From Salpingoeca rosetta (lineage: Eukaryota > Protista > Choanoflagellata): a stretch of 64,000 bases of DNA. How positions within the stretch are numbered: the first letter of the stretch is position 1; each line of letters opens with the position of its first letter. A program made the translations under genes and the position numbers. Under the pieces are notes generated by a model. That model had not been told where the DNA came from, ran no database searches, and saw only the letters and a list, made by a program, of their open reading frames with translations. The DNA lies in assembly GCA_033442325.1 (NCBI GenBank), contig JAWQFM010000007.1, forward strand, positions 634,765 through 698,764, in the 5' to 3' direction. Below, in pieces: positions 8,282 to 53,822 of the stretch.

Positions 8282-9377
8282 GGTGTTCTCCTCGGGTGTG
8301 GAGACGGGTCGGAGAGTTGCATCACCGCCACTTGTTGGCGTGTCTGCGAGTGCGGCCGTGTTGAGCGCAGCAGGTGTTCCCCTTTCACTGCCTGCCACCG
8401 AGGAGTGTTGCTTGTTGTTGTTACTGTTGCTATTGCTGTTGTAAGGGTGGCGGCTGCTGTTGGGAGTGGTTGCTGTGGCGGCCGCATCATCATCGGTGGT
8501 GCCTGTACTGCTTGGGCATGACGCCGTCTCACCCCTCTGTTCCATTCCTCCTCCTCCACCTTCTTCTTCTCCTCCTCCTCTGCCTGCTGCTGCTGCAGTT
8601 GCTGCTGACAACGGTGCCTTCCCACCCCGCACGTCGTACTCGCTCGCGTGCGTGCTGACGCTCCCGGCGATTGGCGGGCGCTGGGGTCGCCACGATGGCG
8701 AGCGCTCGGGACGGCCGCTGCGTGGCGGGGACGAGAGCACAGACTGGCGGCGCACAACAGCCGATGGCAGCGAATCTGGCTCACGTCGCAGCACAGACAC
8801 CTGCGCAAGCATAGGTAGGCGTTTGGGGAGGGAGGATATTGCGCTCATGTGAGCAAGTGTGTGCCCTTGCATGCGCACGTTCGCTTGTTTGTGTGCATGT
8901 GTGCATGTGTGTGAATGTCCAAGGAACGGTTGCGAGTGATTGTGACTCACCCTCAGGTATGACTGGAGGCCGTAATCGCAGTGCATCTTGTACGGATGCC
9001 ACATCATCAGTTCCTGTCAAGCGCAAGCATGCAAATGTCCCGCAAGACATGTCCAAATTAGTTGGCGTGTTCGTGCTGGCGTTTGTAAGCATACGTGTAC
9101 ATGTGCGTTTACATGCGTGTGTGTATGCGTGTGTGTGTGTGTGTGCTTGTGAGCGTGTGAAAAGGTGTGCGAGTGCGTGCGTGTGTGTGTTGTGTGTGTG
9201 TTTGTGTGTCTGTGTGTCTGTGTGAAAAGGTGTGCGAGTGCGTGCGTACATACCCTGATGATCTTGGCGACGAGCTGCCACGATTCAAGCGCTTCTTTCC
9301 ACGGCCGTTCGCTTGCGGACCACGCCTCCTTCGCAAACAGCAAATCCTAACGATCGCATTGTGTGCACATGTACGTA

Positions 9378-9421
<44 letters not shown>

Positions 9422-11072
9422 CGCCGCGTGAGGAAACCTGAGGCCGTAGCACATGCATGCATGCATGCATTCTGTTGCGCAAAGAAGACGCCGCAATACT
9501 GGTGCCATGACCTCTATCTCACCTTCAAGTGAAGCGGAAGAAACGGCAGTTTTGGTTTGTGGCCCGCATTTCTCCAAGCATCCCTGTTACATGAGATGAA
9601 ACAAAACAATTTCAGGTGAGCTATGCCTGCACGCGCAGAGTGGCACCCCTTCCCCCTGTTAGCTGCGCACGCACTCGGTCACGCAAGACACACACACACA
9701 CATACACTGCATGCTTTGTCAAGCAGCCCCATTTCACAATATTATGTTGCGCCAAGCTGCACTCCTTCCCTGCTACTCCTCCCCCAACCACCACCACCAA
9801 CCTGTATGCCTTCATGTTTCTGCTAGTGTCAGTAAGGCGGTCCAAAGATGCGTGCAAGCGCTTGTACTTGTCCGGCAAGTTGCGCCACGCCCGCTTCAGC
9901 GTCGAAACCTGATACCACGCCACAGAGATGCAAGAGCATTGCGTAAGTGAGTTAAAGCGTTGGTGCACACACACACGTGTTCGTATGTGTGTGTGTCTGT
10001 GTTGCAAGTGTTGCGTCATAGTGCTTGTGTATACATTTGTGCGCGCCCCGTGATGCGGTGTGTCTCGTTGCATGATGTTGAGTCATTTCATGGAACTTGT
10101 GCTTGGTGCTCAACCAGAAGTACACGCAACGCGCGACATACCTCGCGACACGCCAGCGCCCCCATGATGGCGAAGAAGGAAAAGTAGTTGTGCAGCTTCA
10201 AGCTTTCCTCTGCCACCCGTAGAAATTTCCTGCAGTAAATACCACCACCACCACCACCACCATCATCGCAACAACAGCAGCAGGCAATCGACATTGGTGA
10301 GGACATTGTTGACGGATTGGGTAGACACAGCACAAGTTGAAAAGGCGTGGCCGCGTGTCATGTGTGTGTGCGTAAACAGGCAACCATGCGCACACGAAGA
10401 ATATTGTAAGAAGCAGCACACACGTGCGCGCACGCACACACACACACACACATCATACGCGCGCGCACCATCACCAGCCGCACGTCCACAAAGCACAACA
10501 CGATGTCTCCAGAAATACACACTCGCACAGACATGTACTCAAGCAAGCAAGCAAGCAACTGCCATCCACGCTTACGCAATCATGGTGGCTTGTTCCTTGC
10601 GCGTCTTGTGCTGGACAATTTCAGCAGCAACCCACTGTCCTTCGTCCTCGAAACGCAGAATGAGCAAGTGAAGGTTTGGCGCAGTGGCGTTGAGGTCCTG
10701 CTTGCTGCCTGAAAACGCTTGCTCAATGTATTCGCGCGGATGCACGCGTTTAAACAGGTCATAGTCGTACAACGCCATCTGCTCCGCCAGCGTGTGTGGC
10801 GGAATCTGCAGCACGATGCCTGGTGTTGGGCCGACGCCCTGTTTCTGCGCGTGCAACACGGGCTTGGGGAGGCCGTGTGCCTGCTGGTACTCAACAGCGG
10901 CAAGCACCTCATCCCTCAGCCAGGCATGCGTCGTGTCACAGTGCAGGTCTTCGATGGTGCGGTGCAGTGCAGCCACGTACTCGGGGCGCTCCTCAAAGTC
11001 AACCCAATATGCAACCACCCAGTGCAACAACAGCTGTTCGCCATAGCGAATGAGTGCGTTTGTGTGTGTTTG

Positions 11073-11154
<82 letters not shown>

Positions 11155-14100
11155 TGTGTGTTGTAGTTGAAGGATGGTTTTAGTGAGCGACGCTTGGTCA
11201 ACAAATGGCAGCAAGATTGGTATTCAAAACAATTTCCACCACCACGCCCTCACATAACACCAGCATAGAAACATACACATTCACACAACACACCCGCACC
11301 CACGCCACACAAATGTACCTTAACACAAACAAGTGACACATCGCATATGTGCGCACCTCAAGCACGTGAACGGTGTTGTCCACGAAAGCCGGCGTCGATG
11401 CTGTGGATGCACGCGAGAGTGCTGCGCCGGTTGCGTCCGCGGACATGTGTGTTTGTCGCGGCTCAATTGGCGGCAGCATCGCCATTCGCACCAGCAGATC
11501 AAGCAGTGCTTCTGGGTCATACGCCATGCGGTAGCACAGCAAGAACACAGCCTGTGCATTTGTGTGTTTGCGTGTTGTGTTTTGTGTGTGTGTGTGTGTG
11601 TGTTTTGCGTGTCGAACAGGTGGCGTGTGAGCGAGAGGGGCGGTCCTTTGGTGTGCATCACAGATGTAAGCGTAATGCACACGCCCTTGCACTTTACACA
11701 TGTACCCACATATGCACATACACGCATGTGCGCGCACATACATACACACATGCACACATGCACACATACACACATGCACATATAAGCAGACATCTGCACA
11801 CAACACGCACCAGGGGCGATGTGGGAATGCCGCTGGAGGCAGCACTCGTGTTTTCAGACGTGGAAGATTGTGATGCAACGAGGCGAGCATTGCGTGGCTC
11901 TGCGTGTGACACCCACGGAAACGCAAATTTGAGCCACTGCTTGCACTTCTTCTCCACAATACGTGACAGCGCCTCTGCATCCTTCGCTGGCGAGTGTTTG
12001 CTTGCAAGCACCTGTAAAACACGCAAGGAGAGGACGGGCATGTACGACAAACACACAACAACAAACAGAGAGCGCATGAGAACATGAGAAATCATCTCGC
12101 AAAGCATGCAATAAAAGGAGACCAACCCCCCCCCCCCACCCACCACACACACACACACACACATGTAGACGTAGATGTAGATGGGCTTACGTGACAGACG
12201 CGAAGTGCCTCTTCTGCAAGTTCATCAAACGATTGAACATCAAGGGAGATGCCAGTGGCCAGCAACAGGTTCTCACGGCTGCCCGGCCTGAACAACACAT
12301 ACACAGGCAAGCACAAACACACATACAAGCACATGCACACGCAGCCGATAATGTGAGGCGCACAACTATTGTGGGTATGATGCAAACTTCACACGCATCG
12401 ACTTTAAACACACACACGACACTACACACACAACACAGACGCGCGCAAACTTCACTCTCGCACAAACCACCCGCGTGGTTCGTGCGCGCTCACCCTGATG
12501 CTCTGCTGGTCCAACTCATGTGCCTGTAGAGCGTTTCCGATGCAGATGAGACGCTGCCCCTGCGCACCACATCCTCGATGTTGGGTGGTGGCGGCAGCCC
12601 CTTTGGCGACGACGCCGCCGCCTGCGCGCTGGAGTGCTGACTCAGCATTCCTTTCACGGCGTCCATCAGGCGTGCGGATGTGCTGGCCATCTCCTTGAGC
12701 ACGTGTTCGCGCTGCTCCGCGTCTGCCATGCCCTGCGGCACGTATTCCACAATCTTCGAGAACTCGTGCCTCAGCGGGGCTATTGCTGCCGAGTAGCGCG
12801 CTGGTGTTGCATCACACGCGTCTTGCACAACCTGGCGCGTGCGGCGTGTGCGTGTGGAGGGAGGGAGTGGGGAACAATAGCGTGTGTGTGCATGTGTGTG
12901 CGTGTGTGTGTGTGTTTGTGTTTGTTTGTGTTTGTGTTTGTGTGTGTGTGTGTGTTTTGTGTTTTTGTGTGCGGGTGTACATGTATGTGCATGTGTGAGT
13001 GTGTGAGTGTGTGAGTGTGTGTGAGTGTGTGCGTGACAGTTGTTGAGTGCATTGTAAAGTGTAGCGAGCCGGTGAAACATGAACACACGTCCCTGCAAAC
13101 ACCCGCGTGTTTGCCCATCTCCTTCGGTGCAACGCACGCACGCATGCACACACGCACACACGCATGCACACACGCACACACACACATGAACATATATGTG
13201 CACGCACGCACCTTGAGGAGGGCCTTCGCGCTGGTGATTACGGTCATGGGCTGCGATGAGATGGCAGCAAGCAGCATGTCAATGTGCGCCTGACTCAGCC
13301 GCATCAGCAGCTGTCGTGTGTCTGCACCTGCTGCTCCGCTTGCCAATGCCGCAGCTGAAACACACAACAGCACGAGGCGCACACAAATGACACGCATACG
13401 TCATGAGTATTGGTGGTGGTAGTTTGGTCTGGGGAGGGGGGCCATAGCACAGCTTGCCACTCTCAAGGTGTGCAAAGTACCACAATAACACAACAACGAC
13501 CATTAAGCCTGCACTCTGGCTGGCTCTGCACAATGACAGTTGCCAACCTGATCGTGAAGCGGCAATGTCTTTGCGGACGCGTTGCGGGGAGAGGCTGTTG
13601 CTCTTTTTCCGAAGGATCTTTCGCTCCATCTTCTCCCGCTGCTTGATTTCCCACTCCTTGATGTTCTTCTTGTTGAGCGCTTCCTTCAGGAACGCCTGTG
13701 CTTCATATGCGTCCTGAAACTCAAACCCATACATGGTGCTTGACTCGCCCTCCTTCTTCAGCACCACGCACAACTGCACGACAGCGGCAAGAGAAGGAGG
13801 AGGTAAGGGGGGGGGTTCAGGGTGTGAGAGTGTGAAAATCAATCCAATAAAGTTCCCAGCACGTACAGAAGAAGAAGGCGTGACTGCTGTTATGTGTGTG
13901 TGTGTGTGCATACGAAAGGAGCGAGGGTCCCCACCAAGCCAGTGCAGCCAACAGGCCAGCAGTAAAAGGACACATTCACACATGCACATACATTCACACT
14001 TGCGCAGAGGCAGCAACATGTGTCTGTGTACCGTGTTGTGTGAGCTGAAGATGGAGATGCGCTCCATGGAGGGAAAGTTGCAGCTGAAGAGTGGCGGTGC

Positions 14101-14640
14101 GGTGGCCTGTTGCGGGTCACGTGCGTACACGCCTTCATCATCCACACCGCAGAGCACCTGAATTGCGCGCAACAACACACCAGGAATGTACACATCGCAA
14201 GTACAAGGCATGTTGCGTGAGAAGCAGCACAACTCAACCCATCATGCACATGGACACGCATACACACACATAACACACGTGCTCGTGCACACAAGTACAC
14301 GTACATACACACACATGCACACACATACACGATTGCGTGCATGTACGCGCCCACGCACGCACATGCACATACATGCACTAACTCTCGCATGCAAACACGC
14401 AACACTCAGCACGCATGTACACATACATGCACACATACATGCACACACACACACACACAGATAAAACACCCGCACAAAACATACCCCTCGCTTGCCGCGC
14501 TTGCTGGCTGTGATTGCCTTGAGACCCGCTTGCATGCGTACAGCAGCGGAAGTGCGGCCGTTCACGATGAGAGACCCTCGAAACACGGCCGGCAGCTCCA
14601 GCACCTCCTGCTGCCACAACTGGCTTCCTTGCGACTCCAT
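5051..14640 (-). CDS. Ras-family guanine nucleotide exchange factor (PTB-like N-terminus, helical region, REM, CDC25 domain, long low-complexity C-terminal tail)
   Basis: CDC25 motifs across exons: IPPHTLAEQMALYDYDLFKRVHPREYI, APNLHLLILRFEDEGQWVAAEIV, FLRVAEESLKLHNYFSFFAIMGAL, STLKRAWRNLPDKYKRLHASLDRLTDTSRNMKAYR, KPKLPFLPLHLK-DLLFAKE. REM-like AVFLLCYRMAYDPEALLDLL and LLHWVVAYWVDFEERPE. Start MESQGSQLWQQ at 14640; final exon of about 3.7 kb runs from about 8800 to 5051. Confidence 0.85.
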
Positions 14641-15580: not shown

Positions 15581-18500
15581 TCAGGGCCATGACTCCAGGC
15601 TGATTTGCTCGCGGATGCGCCTGATGGTGGCCAGATCGCTCGTGGTGTAGCGCGCGTGCGGCGAAGCAACCAGCAGCTCGTGCTTGTGGATCACGTCGTC
15701 GAGGAAGTCCTTGAGCACCCGCCGCCCGCGCCCAAAGCGCTCCACAAAGTCGCGGCCCGTGTAAATGGCAAAGGCCATGATGAGTGAGAACCAGTCCTGC
15801 GCCGTGCTGTACACCTGCAGGCTGCTGCGACCCGCAGTCTGGCCGCAGCCGGCGTTGGCGTCGCTTGGCCCTGGCTTCATTGACGCCGTCAAGCTGGTGG
15901 TGGACGTGGAGTTGGTGCTGCTGAGCGAGCGCACCGGCGTGGTGCCAGTCATGCCCGTGTAGCCAACGCGCCGGCCAACCAGCTGCGGGTGCCGCTCAGC
16001 CAGCTCCGTGTCCAGGCTGGAGGGAAACGGGTCCCCTTCGTGCCGCACCGTCTCAAAGTCAATCAGGTACGCGTTGCGCATCCCGGCCATGACAATGTTG
16101 GCGTTGCGCACGTCGCCGTGGACAAGCCCGCGCAGGGACAGCCGCAGCAGCTGGCGCGCAACATCCAGCAACTGCTCCCGCGTGCTCACCCCGGTCGCGC
16201 TCCCGAGATACGTGGTGGCAAAGCCAACGTGCCTGCCGCCGCGCACTATCTTGGCCACGGAGAAGCGCCCGCTGCGGTCCGTCCACGCCTCTGTCAGCTT
16301 CTCTCCGCTAGGAGACTCCGCATCGGCATCGGCATCGGCATCGGCATTGGCCTCCACCTCCTCGCCGCTATCGCCACCACCCTCGCTCCCCTTTGCCCCG
16401 GGCTTCTCCGCCTGTGCTGCTCCGTCGCGTTGCTCGCCCGCCGTTTCCTCGTCCTCTGCTGCAATGCGCCGTGCAGCCGTTGCAGCGTCACCATCGCCAT
16501 CATCGCCGCTGCCGTCCTCGCTATCGACACCGTTGGCGCTCGTGATGCTGCGTTTGGCGCCTGTGGAGTGGCTGCCGGCGTGGATAGGCTCGCTGTCTTG
16601 CCTGTACCGCCGAGGAACGAGCGGGCTCGTTGCCTTGGGCTCGGTCACGTGGATGTCAATGTCCACACTCCCGCACCGCTGCATCCTGCCACTGTCGCCG
16701 TCACAGCCCTGCGACGATGCGAGCGGCGGCGGCGGCGGCGGGGACACCTCTGCGCCCTCGTTGGAGGTCGTGGACATGGTGGATGTGCACGAGAACGTGG
16801 ACATGACCGATGCCCGCCGCATGCACCGCACAGACGGCGACGATGTTCTGGAGCTGCACGCGCTGCGCGCTGCGTCCTCCCGTGCCGGGCTGAAGTCTCG
16901 CAGCCTGCCCAGTGGCGAGCGCCCGCGCTGGGCGCCATGCATGCCCTCCGGCACCTTGAGCTGGTGCTCTGGCGCGTGCACGATCCTCCACGCCTTCCAC
17001 ACGCGCTCTGCGGTGCGGCTGTACTGCCGCCAGGTGGTGGTGCCGCCGTCAAACAGCGTAATGTCGCTGTGCACGTGCCCGTCCGCGACGCGCACGCTGC
17101 ACTCCTTGATGAAACACAGCGCTTCGGGCTTGATGTCTGCGTGCTTGCGCCAGCCAAGCGCGTGCTCGTACGTGCGTGTGAGCAGCGGGAAGCCCTCGTC
17201 CAGCACGGCTGCGATGACTTCCTGGCATGCGGCGTGAGGGCCGATGAAGAGGTCGCGGCGATACACGCGCGGGTACGATGCGCGGTCGCTCGTGCGCTCG
17301 CCGAGCGCAAACGCGCAGACACCAACTTCGTCCCCGTGCTGCAGCAGACCAAATGCAAACACGTGGCCTTGCAGCTTGGCCCAGTTGCCACCGGGTGTGT
17401 TGTGGTGCAGGGCAACGGCTGCAGCATCTGCTAGGCCGTTCAGCGCCTGCCCGCGGTCCTCGTCTTCCCGCAGACGCTTGCCCACAACAAAGATCCAGCC
17501 TGGGTCGCCCGGCTGCCGTGCTGGCGGCTCACGCGTGCCCGTGGTGTTGCTGCCGGTGTCTTTGTCGGTGATCTTATCCTCGCACACGCAGTCGCTGGTT
17601 GGTGGTGGGCGGGGCGCAAGTGTCGACGCCGGCATGCTGTTGCCCTCGCTTCTTGTGTCGTGGGCGCTGATGCCGATGGTGATTGACGTAGTACAGCTGT
17701 GTCGATGCTCGTCTGGGTTCACAAGCTTCAGGTCCTCGTGCCATGCGAACCCGCGTGTCGTCGCTTCGCGTTGCCCAACGTGCTTGATTTCATTGAATGT
17801 CGTCGCTGGCGCTACCCCTGTCCATGTTCGTGCGTGTATGTGTATGTGTTTGGGGGTGGGGGTGGGACAGGCAATAATTACGAGATGTAAGCTTCAAGTG
17901 CTTAGGCTAGATCCCCAATTCAAGATATGCAGAACGCGAGAGGGCACGCACGCACACCCACGCGTACGCATACACACACACACTCTCACTCTCTCTCTGA
18001 CCTTGTACTGAGCCCATGGTCTCCTCTGCTTCTTCTTGCGGCTCTTCTGCATGGTTGTCGCTCACTTCGGCGAGACGCCTTGCAAGTGGTTGGCAGCTTC
18101 CGAGCAGATACGCAGGAAGTGGTGTTGTTGCGCAGATGCTGTACACGTGAAGGCGCTCGGTGTTGTCGCATGCATCGTCATTGAACTCGAGTTGTGGAAC
18201 CAAAGCTGTATGTGTATGCGTCGTGTGTGTGTGTGTGCCATATGTGCACGCACAAATGCTAGTGTGAGACAACGGATAAAACCTCAACAACCTTATCAGC
18301 CATCGCCGATGTAGGCCCAGGAACTCGAGCACACAAGCACACGCAATGTAGGTTAGGAAAATGAAGGGGGGGGGAGAGTTAAGTAGGGCGCGCGTGCCAA
18401 GGTTGCAGAGGCGTCTGCCTGGTTCGACAACCAGCAAGCGGCGTTTCGCGGCCACGACAAAGAAAGGCAAAACGGTGCATTCGATAGGGCAGGAAGGCCC

Positions 18501-19122
18501 TTAGAACAACGACGGTGGGTGTGTATGTGTGTATGTGTGCATGTGTGCATATGTGGGCATGTGCATATGCGTGCGTTTGATGGGTGTGCGTGCGTTTGAT
18601 GGGTGTGCGTGCGTTTGATGGGTGTGTGTGTGTGTGCGTTCGTCGTGTACCTTGCTGGTGGCGATGGTTTTGGGTGAGGAGCCGTCGCTTTGCGTCTCTG
18701 ACTCGCCGCACGGATGCCTGCAGCTTGGTGATGGAGGTGGCGTATGCGCTGAGCGATGCCGGGTCGTCCAAGCTCGCTGCGTTGCTAAGCTGGTTCAGGA
18801 CAGCATCTGCGGCATCGTTGAGATACTCAAATCGACAGCGGACGGTGTCGAGTTTCTTGCAGAAGAACCGACTGAGGTCTTGCCATGTGTTCACGCGCGA
18901 AAGCTGCTTTCTGTCATTCGTGAACACCTTAAAAACCTTCTTGAGGAGCTCGCGGGAAGGCACGCCGTCAGGTTCCGCGTGCATGTGTGTCCTGATCTCT
19001 GGGACGAACCTCTTGGCGGCAATGTCCAGCCGAACCACGGTCTCCCGGTATCGCTCAAGCAGAGCAATGTACTCCGTGGCCATCCCCACAGACCACCCCG
19101 TGGGCTTGTTCAGCATCGGCAT
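15581..19122 (-). CDS. Atypical protein kinase-like protein with upstream degenerate restriction-endonuclease-like region (Crinkler/CR-kinase-like architecture)
   Basis: A large GC-rich exon (about 17818-15581) has the catalytic loop LVHGDVRNANIV, LIDFE, then ERHP...QDWFSL. Upstream exons lie at about 19122-18650, 18500-18390 and 18205-18008. The start (MPMLNKPTGW, 19122) and upstream exon joins are less certain. Confidence 0.65.
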
Positions 19123-19624
19123 CTTCGCTGATCGCGTGCCACGCCTCTTCTTCTTGCCGTACCTCTGTTCTTCTGTGCGTGGTGGTATGCTGCTGCGTTC
19201 TGCCAACGAGAGTGAGCCTTGCTTGCTCCGACGCACGCCTTTTCTTTTTCCTTTGGGCCCGCGTTAAGCAAGAATGTGGTGGTGTTGTAACAAATTTCTC
19301 CCGCGATGACGTCAAGGACAAAGTCCTCTTGCGTCTCGAAGGAAGAAGAAGAGAAAGCGTTGAACGTGCTGGGTGGTTGGCTGCGCTTCAACCGTCAGCA
19401 TTTTTCTCCAGCGTGTCAGCATTTCTCCAGAACCGAAAGTTTGCGACGCTGTTAGCGATTCCTCGTTTGCTGCACCCTGCACCACACACCACAACAAACG
19501 TGGCACACAACACACAGCAGCCGCTGCACCCCACCATATCCACACACCCCTCCATACACCATCTCCAACTCTCTCCCTCATATCACCCCCAAGCAAGCAA
19601 AGCGCACCCCCTCACACCGCCACT

Positions 19625-22600
19625 ATGAGCCTGAACCAGGAGCAGATTGAGCAGCAGGTGCGTGGCGTGCTGTGTGCTTGCTTTGTGCCTGCTTTGTGCG
19701 TGTCCAACGCATGCCGGCTTGTGCGGCTCTCACCTTCCTGTGTGATGTGTCAGTGGGTGTGATCACACGCTTTTGCTTGTGCTAACATTCACTCGCTAAC
19801 CGACACCCACACTGCATCGCACATGCCTGTGGCTGCCTGTGTCTTGTCGGCAGATTGCTCACATGATCAAGTTTATCGAGAGCGAGGCAGACGAGAAGGT
19901 TACAGAAATCAAAGTCAAGGTATGCGCTGATGCGAGACGACAGCATGTGTGCATGCGCATGTGTGCATTTGTGCATGCGCGCGTGTGTGTGCGAGACAAC
20001 AGCATGCGTGCATGTGTGTGCATGTGTGTGCATGTGTGTGCATGCGTGCTGTTGTTGCTTCCTTTTTTTTGTACCTCAATATATCTGGCCCACGACCCCC
20101 AATGTTGTGTGGTTGCACGCATTCACCGACTCTGCTGCGCTCGTTTGCCTTCCTGCTTCGCTTTGTTTCGTGCAGGCCAAGGAAGAGTTTGACCGCGAGG
20201 TGGCACGAATGGTCAAGGATGAGGAGAGGAAAATCGTCGCCATGTATGAGCGCAGGGAGAAGGGCATGGAAACCCAGAAGCGCATGTGAGTCCCATGCCC
20301 GTCCCTGCAATGATGGCATGTGCACCCCATCCAACCTGTGTCGATGCAACCCTTCACGCTTTTGCTTTGCATCATTTGGGGTTGCCTGTCGAGCACCACC
20401 GCCTTGCGCTCTTGCGTGCCGTCGCGCACACTGCTGTGCACCTCCGCTACGCAAGTCCCTGTTCCTCGCGGCGCACTCGCACCTCTTTGCAACTTCCTCC
20501 TCCGTTTGTGTTTGCTCACACTGCCGTTTGCCACCCACACACAGTGCATACTCAAACAAGCTGAACGCAGCGCGTGTGAAGGTTCTGCAAGCACAGGACG
20601 AGTACCTTCAGGTGTGACGCTTGCTGCTGTTTCTGTTGCTGCAGCACTTACCCTTTGGTTTTCACACCACTTGTTGACTGCCTCATGCAACATCTGCCAC
20701 TCGATGCTTGCGCAGTGTGCCCGCGGAGTCGGCACGACATTCCATGTCCTCCTCACGCTCTGTGTGCGCTTGGTTGATGTGTATGTGTGCATTTCCTCTC
20801 CTAGCACATTGTGTCAGATGCCAAGGAGGAGGTGAAGAAGCTGGCCGGTAACAAGAAGAAGTACTCCAAGCTGCTTCGCGACCTCATCACACAGGTAGCC
20901 ACTGCTCTGATGACCCACCTATTTTGTGCCGGTGCTTGATGCAGTGTGGTGTGTGATGCGAGGCGTAACCCCATGGTCCGTCTGCAAGTGAAGGGAAGGC
21001 TTGTCATCAGCTCGCTCGCTCCTCTGCGTGTGTCGCTGTGTCGCTGTGTCGCTGCCGTTATCTCACTCGCCCACTTGTATGATAACAGACCGCTCACAAT
21101 CAATGCACACACACACAACACATGCACGGGTGCACCGGCCTCTCTGCAACTCTTATTACTTTGTTGCTGTGTTCTATGTAGGGCCTGTGCAGCCTGTTGG
21201 AAACACAGGTTGACCTGATGTGTCGCAAGAAGGACGTGGCCCTCGTCAAGGTGTGTGTCTAAGTTTCTTCTCGGCTGTTCCCACACCCGCATGCACCGCA
21301 TTCTCAGAGCACTTCCCAAGACCCAAATCGTGAGCAACCAAGCTCCCTCTCCCCCGCTCTCGCCTTTTGCAAACCTTTAGCTTTACCCCCCCCTTGCTCC
21401 TCCCTTCCCCCGCACTCCTTATCCCTCCTCTTTTTCCCTCGAGTCGGTGATGCGAATTTTTAATCGTTGCTACTCTTGATCGGACGTGGTTACCACGTTC
21501 ATGAAGCTACATTTATCACCAAGATCTCTGAGACTCGTCTGTTACCGAACCTAGCCCTTAAGGCACAGTTGCCTCAGCATGGTTTCTCTTCCTCCACTCT
21601 TCCGTTGCTGTTGTGATTGAGTCGGTGATGCGAATATTTAATCGTTGCTACTCTTGATCGGACGTGGTTACCACGTTCATGAAGCTACATTTATCACCAA
21701 GATCTCTGAGACTCGTCTGTTACCGAACCTAGCCCTTAAGGCACAGTTGCCTCAGCATGGTTTCTCTTCCTCCACTCTTCCGTTGCTGTTGTGATTGAGT
21801 CGGTGATGCGAATATTTAATCGTTGCTACTCTTGATCGGACGTGGTTACCACGTTCATGAAGCTACATTTATCACCAAGATCTCTGAGACTCTTTCCAAA
21901 CATGACATGCTCCTTGACGTTCATGCACAAACGTGCGCGCTCCGTGTACCCCCTTTCACTCCGCCCCCAACTATTTTTTCCCTCTGTCCTCCCTATCCCT
22001 TTGTGATTCGTTCTCTTTTTGTGTTGTGTTCCTCTTGTGCTCCTGCATTATGGACTGCTGGCTGTGAGTCGGTGATGCGAATTTTTAATCGTTGCTACTC
22101 TTGATCGGACGTGGTTACCACGTTCATGAAGCTACAATTATCACCAAGATCTCTGAGACTCTTTGGGTCGCGTGTCCACGTTGCTAGCGCGCACCACTGC
22201 CAGCCCTGCTCCACTCTCCCTGTTTCATCCCCTTACCTCCTTCATTCTTCTTTTTTTTATACGATGCACTGAGTCTTTGGGTCTGGTTTGCACCATCGGT
22301 CAACATCACACCCGCATCTCCCAACCGACCAGACATATCAGCACATCGCCAGCTTACAATCGCAAGCTCACAATGTCTTTGCTCTGAACATGCCTGGTGC
22401 TTGTGTGCTGTATGTGCGCTTAACAGGAGGTCTTGAGCGACGCTGTTGCAGACTTCAAGAGCAAGACAAAGCTGGACTGCACCGTCAACGTCAACGAGAA
22501 GAACTTCCTCAACGATGACTGGTACGTGCCAATATCCTCTCACGCAAACTGCTGCTGGCACTGTGTACACCACATGCACACGCATGCATGTACTCACACA

Positions 22601-23163
22601 CACACACACACTCTTACCCACCCACCATCACCACGCCCTTGTTTGTGCGCAGCGGTGGCGGCGTCGAGCTCTCTGTGCGAGGCAACACAAAGGTCACCAA
22701 CACACTCGACAAGCGCATGGATATGGCCGTGTCCCGGGTAAGCACCATGTTGCCCAAAAGTGCCCTGAAGTTACACGCTCCCTCCGCTCGTGTGTGTATT
22801 TTCTCGTTCCCCTTGTGTGCTGTGGCTTTCACAGCACACCCAAGCACTCGCAGTCGGTGATGCGAATTTTTAATCGTTGCTACTCTTGATCGGACGTGGT
22901 TACCACGTTCATGAAGCTACATTTATCACCAAGATCTCTGAGACTGGCCTCCAGTGCTTCACCACAACACAACACAACACAGCACAACACAGCACATGCA
23001 TGTGTCACGTTGTGCATCATCTCTAGTCTTCACACCTGCTGCCTTGACTCACGGGACGTCCTTGTTTTGTTGTCTTGTTTATCGCGCCTGCTGCCAACAG
23101 TTGATGCCTGCCATCCGGTACAAGCTCTTTGGCGCGTCAACCAGCCGTGCCCACTTCGACTAA
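19625..23163 (+). CDS. ATP6V1E: V-type proton ATPase subunit E (9 exons)
   Basis: Exons 19625-19657, 19854-19919, 20176-20285, 20545-20611, 20805-20894, 21182-21250, 22427-22521, 22653-22737 and 23101-23163 splice in frame to MSLNQEQIEQQIAHMIKFIESEADEKVTEIKVKAKEEFDREVARMV...QKRIAYSNKLNAARVKVLQAQDEYL...CGGVELSVRGNTKVTNTLDKRMDM...LMPAIRYKLFGASTSRAHFD*, a classic V-ATPase E sequence. Confidence 0.96.
21441..21536 (+). ncRNA. U24: Box C/D snoRNA U24 (snR24/SNORD24 family), copy 1, ATP6V1E intron 6
   Basis: Terminal stem GAGTC/GACTC, box C GTGATGC, D' TTGA, internal hairpin ACGTGGT/ACCACGT, box D CTGA. Guides TTGCTACT and TTATCACCAAGATCT are antisense to the conserved LSU rRNA segment AGATCTTGGTGGTAGTAGCAA. 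The 3' end matches yeast snR24 (...UUAUCACCAAGAUCUCUGA, recalled). Confidence 0.9.
21619..21714 (+). ncRNA. U24: Box C/D snoRNA U24, copy 2
   Basis: Same 96-nt unit 178 bp downstream of copy 1, with one difference (GAATATTT vs GAATTTTT). Confidence 0.88.
21797..21892 (+). ncRNA. U24: Box C/D snoRNA U24, copy 3
   Basis: Identical to copy 2, 178 bp further on. Confidence 0.85.
22066..22161 (+). ncRNA. U24: Box C/D snoRNA U24, copy 4
   Basis: Same unit with unique flanks; variant CAATTATCACC vs CATTTATCACC lies outside the pairing guide. Confidence 0.9.
22851..22946 (+). ncRNA. U24: Box C/D snoRNA U24, copy 5, ATP6V1E intron 8
   Basis: Same unit in a different intron (22738-23100). Terminal stem is CAGTC/GACTG, a compensatory change relative to GAGTC/GACTC. 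Confidence 0.9.

Positions 23164-23465: not shown

Positions 23466-23518
<53 letters not shown>
23466..23518. repeat. (CAA)n microsatellite
   Basis: Perfect trinucleotide run between the ATP6V1E 3' end and the OGDH start. Confidence 0.95.
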
Positions 23519-23637
23519 GTCGTGGTCATGGGTGGTGGTGTTTGTGTGCTTCAAAGCAAGACCGTCATTCACGCGCCGCACAAAAACGAAACACAAACAA
23601 AACCGTTTGCGCGGTGGTGCAACACCAAACAACGCTG

Positions 23638-33562
<9,925 letters not shown>

Positions 33563-33723
33563 AAACGAGATGTGCCGGCGAGCGAGGGAAGAGGAGAAGG
33601 AGGAGGAGGAGGAGGGGTGGTGGTGTGAGGAGAGGGATTGCTTGTGTGGTTGTGATGATGATGATGATGATGATGCTCGTCGTGTGGTTGATGATGATGA
33701 CGGTCAATCAATAAACGAACGCA

Positions 33724-35325
33724 ATGTCCGCTTTTTCCAGCAGATACAACACACACACTCGCTTCCATCCTTCTCCCCCTTCTTCCTTGCCCGGAGCGGT
33801 TGCCATGCGCGAGGTAGCTGTGCAGGCCAACTGCCTGATATGTGACGCACACTTCCTGGTGGTTGTCACGGCTGTGCCGCCCGCGTCCGCGTTCTCTGGT
33901 CGTCGTGGCACGCAGGAGTTTGAAGACCTCTTGGAAAAGGTGTGTGTGTATGTGTGTATGTGTGTGTATGCGTGTGTATGCGTGTGTATGTGTATGTATG
34001 TGTGTGTGCGTGTGTGTGTGTGTTGTGTGTTGTGTGTGTGTGTATGCGTGTGTGTATGTGTGTGTGCGTGTGTGTGAATGCGCTGCGAGGCTCGCGTGTG
34101 GGAGAACTGCACGCCCACTTCCCTCCGTGCTCCATCTCACTCTCCTCCACATCCTCCCATACACACACACACACACACATACACACACACGTACACATAC
34201 ACATACACACACACATGCACACACACATGCACAGATTCAACGTGAAGCGTCGCACCCTTTGCACCGGTTCTTGCGGTGCCCCACATGTACGGAGATTGTG
34301 GCCCATTGCGCGTATCAGGATTGGCTCGGCAGCAAGGACGAGGAATGCCACCTATCCCTCTGCAAGCTCTATTCCTACGCGCCCGACTCTGAAGTGTAAG
34401 CACGCATGCACTCCACTCATGCGAGTTGACGCCTTGCTGCGACCCTCTTGTTCCATGATGGCTGAACACCTATTTGATTCACACCAGCAGGTCTAACCTC
34501 CGGTCCTTCACGTCCGCACGTACATGCACTTACAACTGCAGGGAGGCTGAGCGCTTGCCGCCGCTGTTCATCAATGGCAAGAAGCCGGAAGAAAAGCCAA
34601 GGTGGCAACTGGCTCATGGCATTGGACCAAAGACGCTGGAAGTTGACAGGTCAGGGAAGAGAGTGGTGTTGCATGCATTGTATGGCGTAGTACACCGCGA
34701 TGAGCAACCACACACACACACTCACACACACACTCACCACACACACACACATATACACACATACACACCACACTCACACACACTCACACACACACACTCA
34801 CACACACATACACAACCACACTCACTCACTCACACACTCACTCACACACTCACGCACACGCCACACCCCTGCCCTCACGCGTTCGCCACAGGTCGCGCAG
34901 TGGCCGCTTGCACCGCCCGTCGCTGAAGCAGTTTGGCATCACCGGTCCGCGCATCCCTGCCGTGGAAGATCCAGCCAGTTTCGAATACACCATCGAAAGC
35001 ATCTACTCTCTGTGCGTTGCGCTCAGTGCGTGTGCGCGCGCGCGTGCGTGTGTGTATGAAGTGTTTGACAACTGCGGTTCACTGCGTACACTTCGAAGAC
35101 TTCCTCCAACCGCACACACACACACATGCACACACACACACCTGCACACACACACACACCAACTCACGCATGCGCGAGATGTCCACATCACCGTGCAGGG
35201 CGGAGCATCCTGCTCGGCTGGAGGCAGCGCTGCCACTCCTGGAGAAGAACAAGCCGCTCATCCACGCGTGGGACAATATCTCCAGCGATCCCATGATCAC
35301 TGGCGAGGCAGAGGACACAGCTTAG
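33724..35325 (+). CDS. Hypothetical protein with CxxC...CxxC motifs (5 exons)
   Basis: In-frame GT-AG exons: (M)REVAVQANCLICDAHFLVVV...EDLLEK / IQREASHPLHRFLRCPTCTEIVAHC...DSE / SNLRSFTSARTCTYNCRE...EVDR / ...IESIYSL / AEHPARLEAALPLLEKNKPLIHAWDNISSDPMITGEAEDTA*. Start could be 33724 or about 33805. Confidence 0.55.

Positions 35326-46399: not shown

Positions 46400-53822
<7,423 letters not shown>

Follow-up and report, generated by a model that had tools for sequence, protein, structure and literature searches.

The locus described here raises the question of how one intron can deliver several copies of the same small nucleolar RNA (snoRNA), and of whether such copies are working genes or remnants of a recent duplication. 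It lies in the choanoflagellate Salpingoeca rosetta, in a stretch of 64,000 nucleotides (nt) analysed as a whole (contig JAWQFM010000007.1 of assembly GCA_033442325.1, positions 634,765 to 698,764, forward strand; hereafter the window, whose first letter is position 1), and consists of five 96-nt units in two introns of the gene for V-ATPase subunit E. We read these units as repeated genes for a single box C/D snoRNA with two guides, of the U24/snR24 type, expressed from introns 6 and 8 of the V-ATPase E pre-mRNA, and we consider this very probable.

Five nearly identical units

Inspection of the window together with a repeat search located the five units on the + strand; they are numbered 1 to 5 in the order of their starts (21441, 21619, 21797, 22066 and 22851). 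The units, with the tandem to which the first three belong and their scores against the Rfam model SNORD24, are:

21441..21536, + strand: U24-type box C/D snoRNA, copy 1; intron 6; 37.4 bits; boxes and terminal stem
21619..21714, + strand: U24 copy 2; intron 6, second unit of the 178-nt tandem; 38.7 bits; one base different from copy 1 (position 18)
21797..21892, + strand: U24 copy 3; intron 6, last, partial tandem unit; 38.7 bits; unrelated 3' flank
22066..22161, + strand: U24 copy 4; intron 6, dispersed; 38.1 bits; one base different from copy 1 (position 72); unrelated flanks
22851..22946, + strand: U24 copy 5; intron 8; 37.4 bits; swapped end pair
21441..21892, + strand: 178-nt tandem (snoRNA plus 82-nt spacer), 2.5 units, copies 1-3; 99-100% identical including the spacer in the repeat search, spacers identical by base-by-base comparison

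When the units were aligned with their flanks and compared base by base, any two of them differed at 0-3 of the 96 positions, and the overall identity was 98-100%; a preliminary description of this DNA, which had announced five near-identical 96-nt units, was exact also in their starts. The few differences distinguish the copies: a T/A variant at position 18 marks copies 2 and 3, which are identical and have their upstream spacer in common, and another at position 72 marks copy 4. In copy 5 the outermost stem pair G1-C96 has become C1-G96, and the inner 94 nt are those of copy 1. A whole-genome DNA search and a search with the SNORD24 covariance model found only these five copies in the assembly to which the window belongs (55.4 Mb, 68 contigs). 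A sixth, weak SNORD24 match on contig C17 was rejected, being an aspartate-rich, coding-like GAT/GAC stretch without box D.

Identity of the snoRNA

All five copies carry box C (GUGAUGC, positions 7-13) and box D (CUGA, positions 88-91), and are closed by a 5-bp terminal stem, GAGUC/GACUC; the combination of boxes and terminal stem by which a methylation-guide snoRNA is recognised was, therefore, present in every copy. The last position of box C is a C and not an A, and the Rfam consensus of U24 likewise has no A there. The internal boxes are degenerate (D' UUGA, C' UGAAGC), with an 8-bp hairpin between them.

Each of the units matched the full SNORD24 model (RF00069, positions 1-76) with 37.4-38.7 bits and a local E-value of 1.5e-4 to 3e-4, the Rfam gathering cut-off being 41 bits. 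A scan of the 64-kb window at the curated cut-offs reached no family at all, and SNORD24 was the sole credible Rfam family when matches were reported by E-value. The low score is due to the extra length around the hairpin and to the altered guides. As a calibration, 20 environmental loci were picked from metagenomes by the U24 guides alone: SNORD24 matched 19 of them at 28-68 bits, with 6 of the 19 below the cut-off. Of 121 U24 units from the environment, moreover, 79 had an internal hairpin of at least 4 pairs. The Rfam check that had been proposed for these units gave a match over the full model with a score under the cut-off, which we take as a near miss and not as a failure of identity. 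Despite this narrow miss, the assignment to U24 is well supported by evidence at the level of function, namely by the guides.

Guides and their predicted targets in the large-subunit rRNA

The large-subunit (LSU) rRNA of S. rosetta itself reads AGAUCUUGGUGA-C-AGUAGCAACGAUU at L016 1500-1525 (G000:C8:2020746-2020771). The guide that abuts box D forms 12 Watson-Crick pairs with the first 12 nt of this segment, and the guide that lies one nucleotide from the D' box UUGA forms 13 with its last 13 nt, so that both offer the complementarity to rRNA (at least 10 nt, ending beside D or D') that is expected of a methylation guide. In this respect the preliminary description, which had seen a U24-type box C/D snoRNA with two rRNA guides, proved correct.

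The target string of the yeast type was absent from the whole genome, and it was a looser pattern that revealed the target in the ribosomal DNA (rDNA) copies, as GAUCUUGGUGACAGUAGCAA, within a locus whose Rfam match is eukaryotic LSU rRNA. The rRNA bases are here GGUGAC and AACGAUU, compared to GGUGGU and AAAUAUU in the yeast-type search pattern, and the guide bases are AUCACC and AAUCGUU, compared to ACCACC and AUAUUU in the Rfam consensus. Since the guides match the lineage-specific bases of the rRNA, guide and target have changed together, and this joint change is the strongest sign of function that can be obtained from sequence alone.

The fifth-nucleotide rule, according to which the target is the fifth paired nucleotide, places the predicted targets at C 1504 and A 1516 of L016, within the AGAUCUUGGUG...AGUAGCAA stretch; if the D' register is shifted by one, the second target becomes G 1517. 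The two predicted targets are 12 nt apart, exactly as positions 1437 and 1449 in yeast, where the deletion of snR24 leads to the loss of Cm1437 and Am1449/Gm1450 (PMC5027498). The two guides of each unit address the same pair of neighbouring LSU sites as yeast snR24, and the positions predicted here are the homologues of Cm1437 and Am1449/Gm1450. The D guide would direct 2'-O-methylation to the C before the asterisk in AGAUC*UUGGUGA, and the D' guide to the A before the asterisk in AGUA*GCAACGAUU (or, with a shifted register, to the G after it). Each RNA of ~94-96 nt is expected to be bound by the core proteins of the box C/D class, i.e., the methyltransferase fibrillarin and its partners Nop56, Nop58 and Snu13. 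A shuffle test of the longest complementary run on a 12-kb rDNA stretch was non-discriminating, as shuffles rich in T find matches among the simple repeats of the spacer; the argument for targeting relies on the adjacent placement of both guides at the homologous U24 sites.

The LSU target string occurs at 11 places, on contigs C3, C8, C14, C23, C24, C25, C30, C35 and C36 (loci L015-L018). Several of these sites are located no more than a few hundred to ~25,000 bases from a contig start, or no more than ~3.4 kb from a contig end (e.g., C23:74, C25:516, C35:6672, and C8:2020747 of 2024178). The rDNA units seem, therefore, to be located at many contig ends, and may have a subtelomeric position.

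The host gene

The units are contained in a gene of nine exons on the + strand, whose placement is based on a gene model from the sequence and on exon-wise homology:

19625..23163, + strand: host coding sequence, V-ATPase subunit E, nine exons; matches to PF01991 and to solved structures
19625-19657, 19854-19919, 20176-20285, 20545-20611, 20805-20894, 21182-21250, 22427-22521, 22653-22737 and 23101-23163, + strand: exons 1 to 9
21251..22426, + strand: intron 6, 1,176 nt, phase 0, copies 1-4; GT..AG, exons 6 and 7 joined in frame
22738..23100, + strand: intron 8, 363 nt, copy 5; donor GTAAGC, acceptor CAACAG

All eight introns are of the GT..AG type and measure, in order, 196, 256, 259, 193, 287, 1176, 131 and 363 nt; the coordinates of introns 6 and 8 agree with those first described, and the other six introns range from 131 to 287 nt. 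In an exon-wise search, exons 3, 4, 5 and 8 matched the family profile PF01991 in a colinear manner (profile positions 17-52, 55-75, 77-105 and 162-187) with 18.2, 16, 19 and 14.1 bits, respectively. These values were obtained exon by exon; each is below the whole-protein cut-off of 24.2 bits, and their sum is 67 bits. Exons 2 and 6 matched, among solved structures, only chains of V-ATPase subunit E1, at residues 12-32 and 123-145; exons 7 and 9, searched alone, gave no match. The gene model, the PF01991 matches and the strand of the host all agree with the earlier claim that four units are placed in one V-ATPase E intron and one in another.

All copies lie on the sense strand of the host. The four units of intron 6 form, in fact, an intronic cluster in the usual meaning of the term, i.e., a single spliceosomal intron that holds at least two snoRNA genes in the sense orientation of the host. 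The distance from the 5' splice site to the first copy is 190 nt in intron 6 and 113 nt in intron 8, and that from the last copy to the 3' splice site is 265 and 154 nt, respectively.

Origin and persistence of the copies

The copies would have arisen by local duplication, which produced the 178-nt tandem of copies 1-3 and the two dispersed copies. The identity between copies ends exactly at the unit ends: the sequences on both sides of copies 4 and 5, upstream of copy 1 and downstream of copy 3 resemble one another no more than shuffled sequences do, and copies 4 and 5 show neither a poly(A) tail nor a target-site duplication. Gene conversion limited to the snoRNA, or the copying of the mature-sized unit only, would explain such sharp borders. 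A further short match in intron 6 might be what is left of a lost copy:

22268..22284, + strand: possible lost-copy relic, 17-nt echo of box D, stem and 3' flank of copy 4; local alignment CTGAG--TCTTTGGGTC with 22152-22169; a weak, single short match

This possible relic would be in line with a different history, in which the amplification is recent and neutral, one or two copies supply U24, and the others are young, functionless duplicates likely to decay. The same history is suggested by the identity of copies 2 and 3, by the 99-100% identity of the tandem spacers and by the presence of a single U24 copy at 114 of 117 environmental loci (described below). However, copies 4 and 5 maintain 98-100% identity over the whole unit despite fully diverged flanks, and the persistence of unit identity beside such flanks needs selection or gene conversion. 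In addition, multi-copy arrays recur in the S. rosetta genome: a second array, at L138 1545-2063 on the minus strand (G000:C7:2102044-2102562), consists of three tandem box C/D-like units (GUGAUGA ... CUGA), 170-240 nt apart and without match to any Rfam family, which are only ~80% alike and have kept their boxes. Divergence with retention of the boxes suggests that such arrays persist in this genome and that inner copies remain under selection. On these grounds we regard neutral amplification as possible and worth keeping in mind, but as clearly the less probable history.

Proposed expression and release from the introns

The reading of the units as U24 genes implies that they would be transcribed within the V-ATPase E pre-mRNA and then released from introns 6 and 8; expression from the host pre-mRNA is proposed because the copies are on its strand, are intronic and have no common upstream sequence. 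For copy 5, splicing, debranching and exonucleolytic trimming to the protein-protected ends would suffice. In intron 6 the exonuclease route alone would halt at copies 1 and 4, leaving an RNA of ~721 nt with small nucleolar ribonucleoprotein (snoRNP) ends, and the release of copies 2 and 3 would need cuts in the spacers. The most likely route for the inner copies would consist of such cuts, after which exonucleases would trim each piece back to the ends shielded by protein, as in the intronic clusters of plants. Both endonucleolytic separation and long products ending in snoRNAs had been put forward in the preliminary description, and they are reasonable predictions from the layout. On balance, we are inclined to think that the copies of intron 6 probably mature separately.

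Recursive splicing that would isolate each snoRNA was considered and is unlikely, as intron 6 has no AGGT site. The tracts upstream of the units are slightly richer in pyrimidines (0.65-0.92) than the introns in general (0.57-0.64).

In vertebrates, the optimum for splicing-coupled snoRNP assembly lies ~70-80 nt from the 3' splice site. The last copies in introns 6 and 8 end beyond this distance, at 265 and 154 nt, and this is one of the points that weigh against our reading. The others are the shortfall of 2-4 bits from the RF00069 cut-off; the identity of copies 2 and 3 including their spacer, which makes their intactness uninformative on function; the 82-nt spacer, which has no notable stem-loop of the RNase III type and folds no better than its shuffles (z -0.5); and the outcome of an insensitive exon-wise search of the genome, which found no clear RNase III domain and no match to PF00636. 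The only RNase III-like signal in this search was an 18.7-bit match of one exon to PF14622, at G000:C16:1213968-1214090 (L139), with one in-frame TGA.

The spacer and the RNase III search would also fit a situation in which only the outer ends are matured, so that intron 6 yields mainly a snoRNA-ended long non-coding RNA (sno-lncRNA) of ~721 nt, from copy 1 to copy 4, and free U24 comes mostly from intron 8, where copy 5 is alone. In mammals, introns with at least two snoRNAs do give rise to sno-lncRNAs (PMC11028025, PMC4234469). On the other hand, individual snoRNAs are reported to come from the intronic clusters of rice, Drosophila and Plasmodium (PMC2780460, PMC2656528), and the ~80% similarity with kept boxes of the three units in the other S. 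rosetta array suggests selection on inner copies. We consider it improbable that the ~721-nt RNA is the main product of intron 6; the formation of sno-lncRNAs can, in any case, coexist with normal maturation.

Yeasts and plants have snoRNAs that are transcribed on their own (PMC2780460), and each copy could, in principle, be a gene with its own promoter that is intronic by position only. This is very improbable, as nothing common was found upstream of copies 1, 2/3, 4 and 5 (z -0.8 to 2.1), and every copy is on the host sense strand. Finally, that the near-perfect 178-nt tandem of copies 1-3 is an artefact of assembly, with fewer true copies in intron 6, can hardly be maintained: the repeat is only ~450 nt long and is easily spanned by short or long reads, position 18 separates copy 1 from copies 2 and 3, the unique and unrelated flanks of copies 4 and 5 show that these are not assembly duplications, and the assembly as a whole has few breaks (55.4 Mb in 68 contigs).

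Comparison with known systems and environmental loci

With SNORD24/snR24 (RF00069) the S. rosetta units have in common the box C/D structure, the location in introns and a pair of guides directed at neighbouring sites in one and the same stretch of LSU rRNA. They differ in length (94-96 nt, compared to 76 model positions), mainly through the 8-bp hairpin between D' and C', in having guides fitted to the lineage-specific rRNA, and in being five rather than one.

The host is different as well. U24 is intronic in yeast, as reported in studies on ASC1 (PMC5027498), and is found in intron 3 of RPL5 in sponges and in intron 2 of RPL7A in human (PMC3412847), whereas in S. rosetta it resides in a V-ATPase gene; of the two Neurospora homologues, one is intergenic and one intronic (PMC2780460). 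The preliminary description had seen here a switch of host: a host other than ASC1, RPL5 or RPL7A is indeed found, but this is not exceptional, being expected from the mobility of snoRNAs, and its direction cannot be deduced without relatives.

Intronic clusters of snoRNA genes have been described in rice, Drosophila and Plasmodium (PMC2780460, PMC2656528), including an intron with two snoRNAs in Plasmodium falciparum (PMC2656528), and a review treats them as a standard category, animals having predominantly one snoRNA per intron (PMC11028025). The S. rosetta array resembles these clusters in having several snoRNA genes in one spliceosomal intron and on the host strand (PMC2780460, PMC2656528, PMC11028025), and differs from them in being a homo-cluster of one snoRNA, in part as a perfect tandem. 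With the mammalian sno-lncRNAs of the Prader-Willi region and elsewhere it shares the precondition of at least two box C/D snoRNAs in one intron (PMC11028025); the spacers, of 82-173 nt, are short compared to typical sno-lncRNA bodies, and the units are four and not two.

A strict pattern built from both guides gave no match in metagenomes, and a looser U24 pattern retrieved the 117 environmental loci mentioned above. None of the 117 was close in sequence outside the guide, and none had V-ATPase E exons nearby, which indicates that the V-ATPase E host is at least not widespread. At 3 of the 117 loci, two or three units were found within 0.3-1.4 kb on one strand:

L033 847-1235, L083 1983-2684 and L074 2235-3610: multi-unit U24 loci of environmental eukaryotes, on metagenome contigs

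These loci share with S. rosetta the D' region (UUGCUACUCUUGA in L083) and the internal hairpin, and their existence shows that multi-copy U24 is not unique to this organism. At other environmental loci, U24 stands beside snoR12 (L054, L073 and L026) or beside TtnuCD8-11 of the Tetrahymena type (L039), in groupings that look like polycistronic clusters.

The arrangement is, then, known from plants, flies and other protists, and on its own it overturns no rule. The departure from one snoRNA per intron had first been regarded as exceptional; this view was not sustained, as the rule describes what vertebrates and yeast tend to do, and clusters occur in rice, Drosophila and Plasmodium (PMC2780460, PMC2656528, PMC11028025). 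We can suggest, only tentatively, that multi-copy arrays in single introns may be a regular mode of snoRNA production in this close relative of animals, in which case the one-per-intron organisation of animals and yeast would be derived and not ancestral to the animal lineage. If so, one would expect that the units are cut apart in a plant-like and perhaps splicing-independent manner, or that intron RNAs capped by snoRNPs are abundant. No survey of snoRNAs in choanoflagellates came up in a literature search, and for this lineage the locus provides a confident annotation of U24 with two predicted methylation sites. It is also a clean example of joint change in a guide RNA and the rRNA that it targets. 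With four units housed in intron 6 and a solitary one in intron 8 of its host gene, it offers, moreover, a compact system in a close animal relative in which the release of inner copies, and the nuclease responsible, could be tested.

Neighbouring features of the window

Matches to mir-297, mir-466, MIR2646 and SCARNA2 elsewhere in the window were rejected, as they fall on TG/CA microsatellites and score far under their cut-offs. Long microsatellites of this type, many of them intronic, were observed at 9085-14466, 18519-20060, 25486-25695, 29309-35156 and 47996-48243. An open frame of 285 amino acids on the minus strand (18379-19236) is divergent from the V-ATPase E gene and directly upstream of it; the start regions of the two are less than 400 nt apart, and may enclose a bidirectional promoter region. 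A perfect (CAA)18-like run is located at 23466-23519, ~300 nt past the V-ATPase E stop codon.

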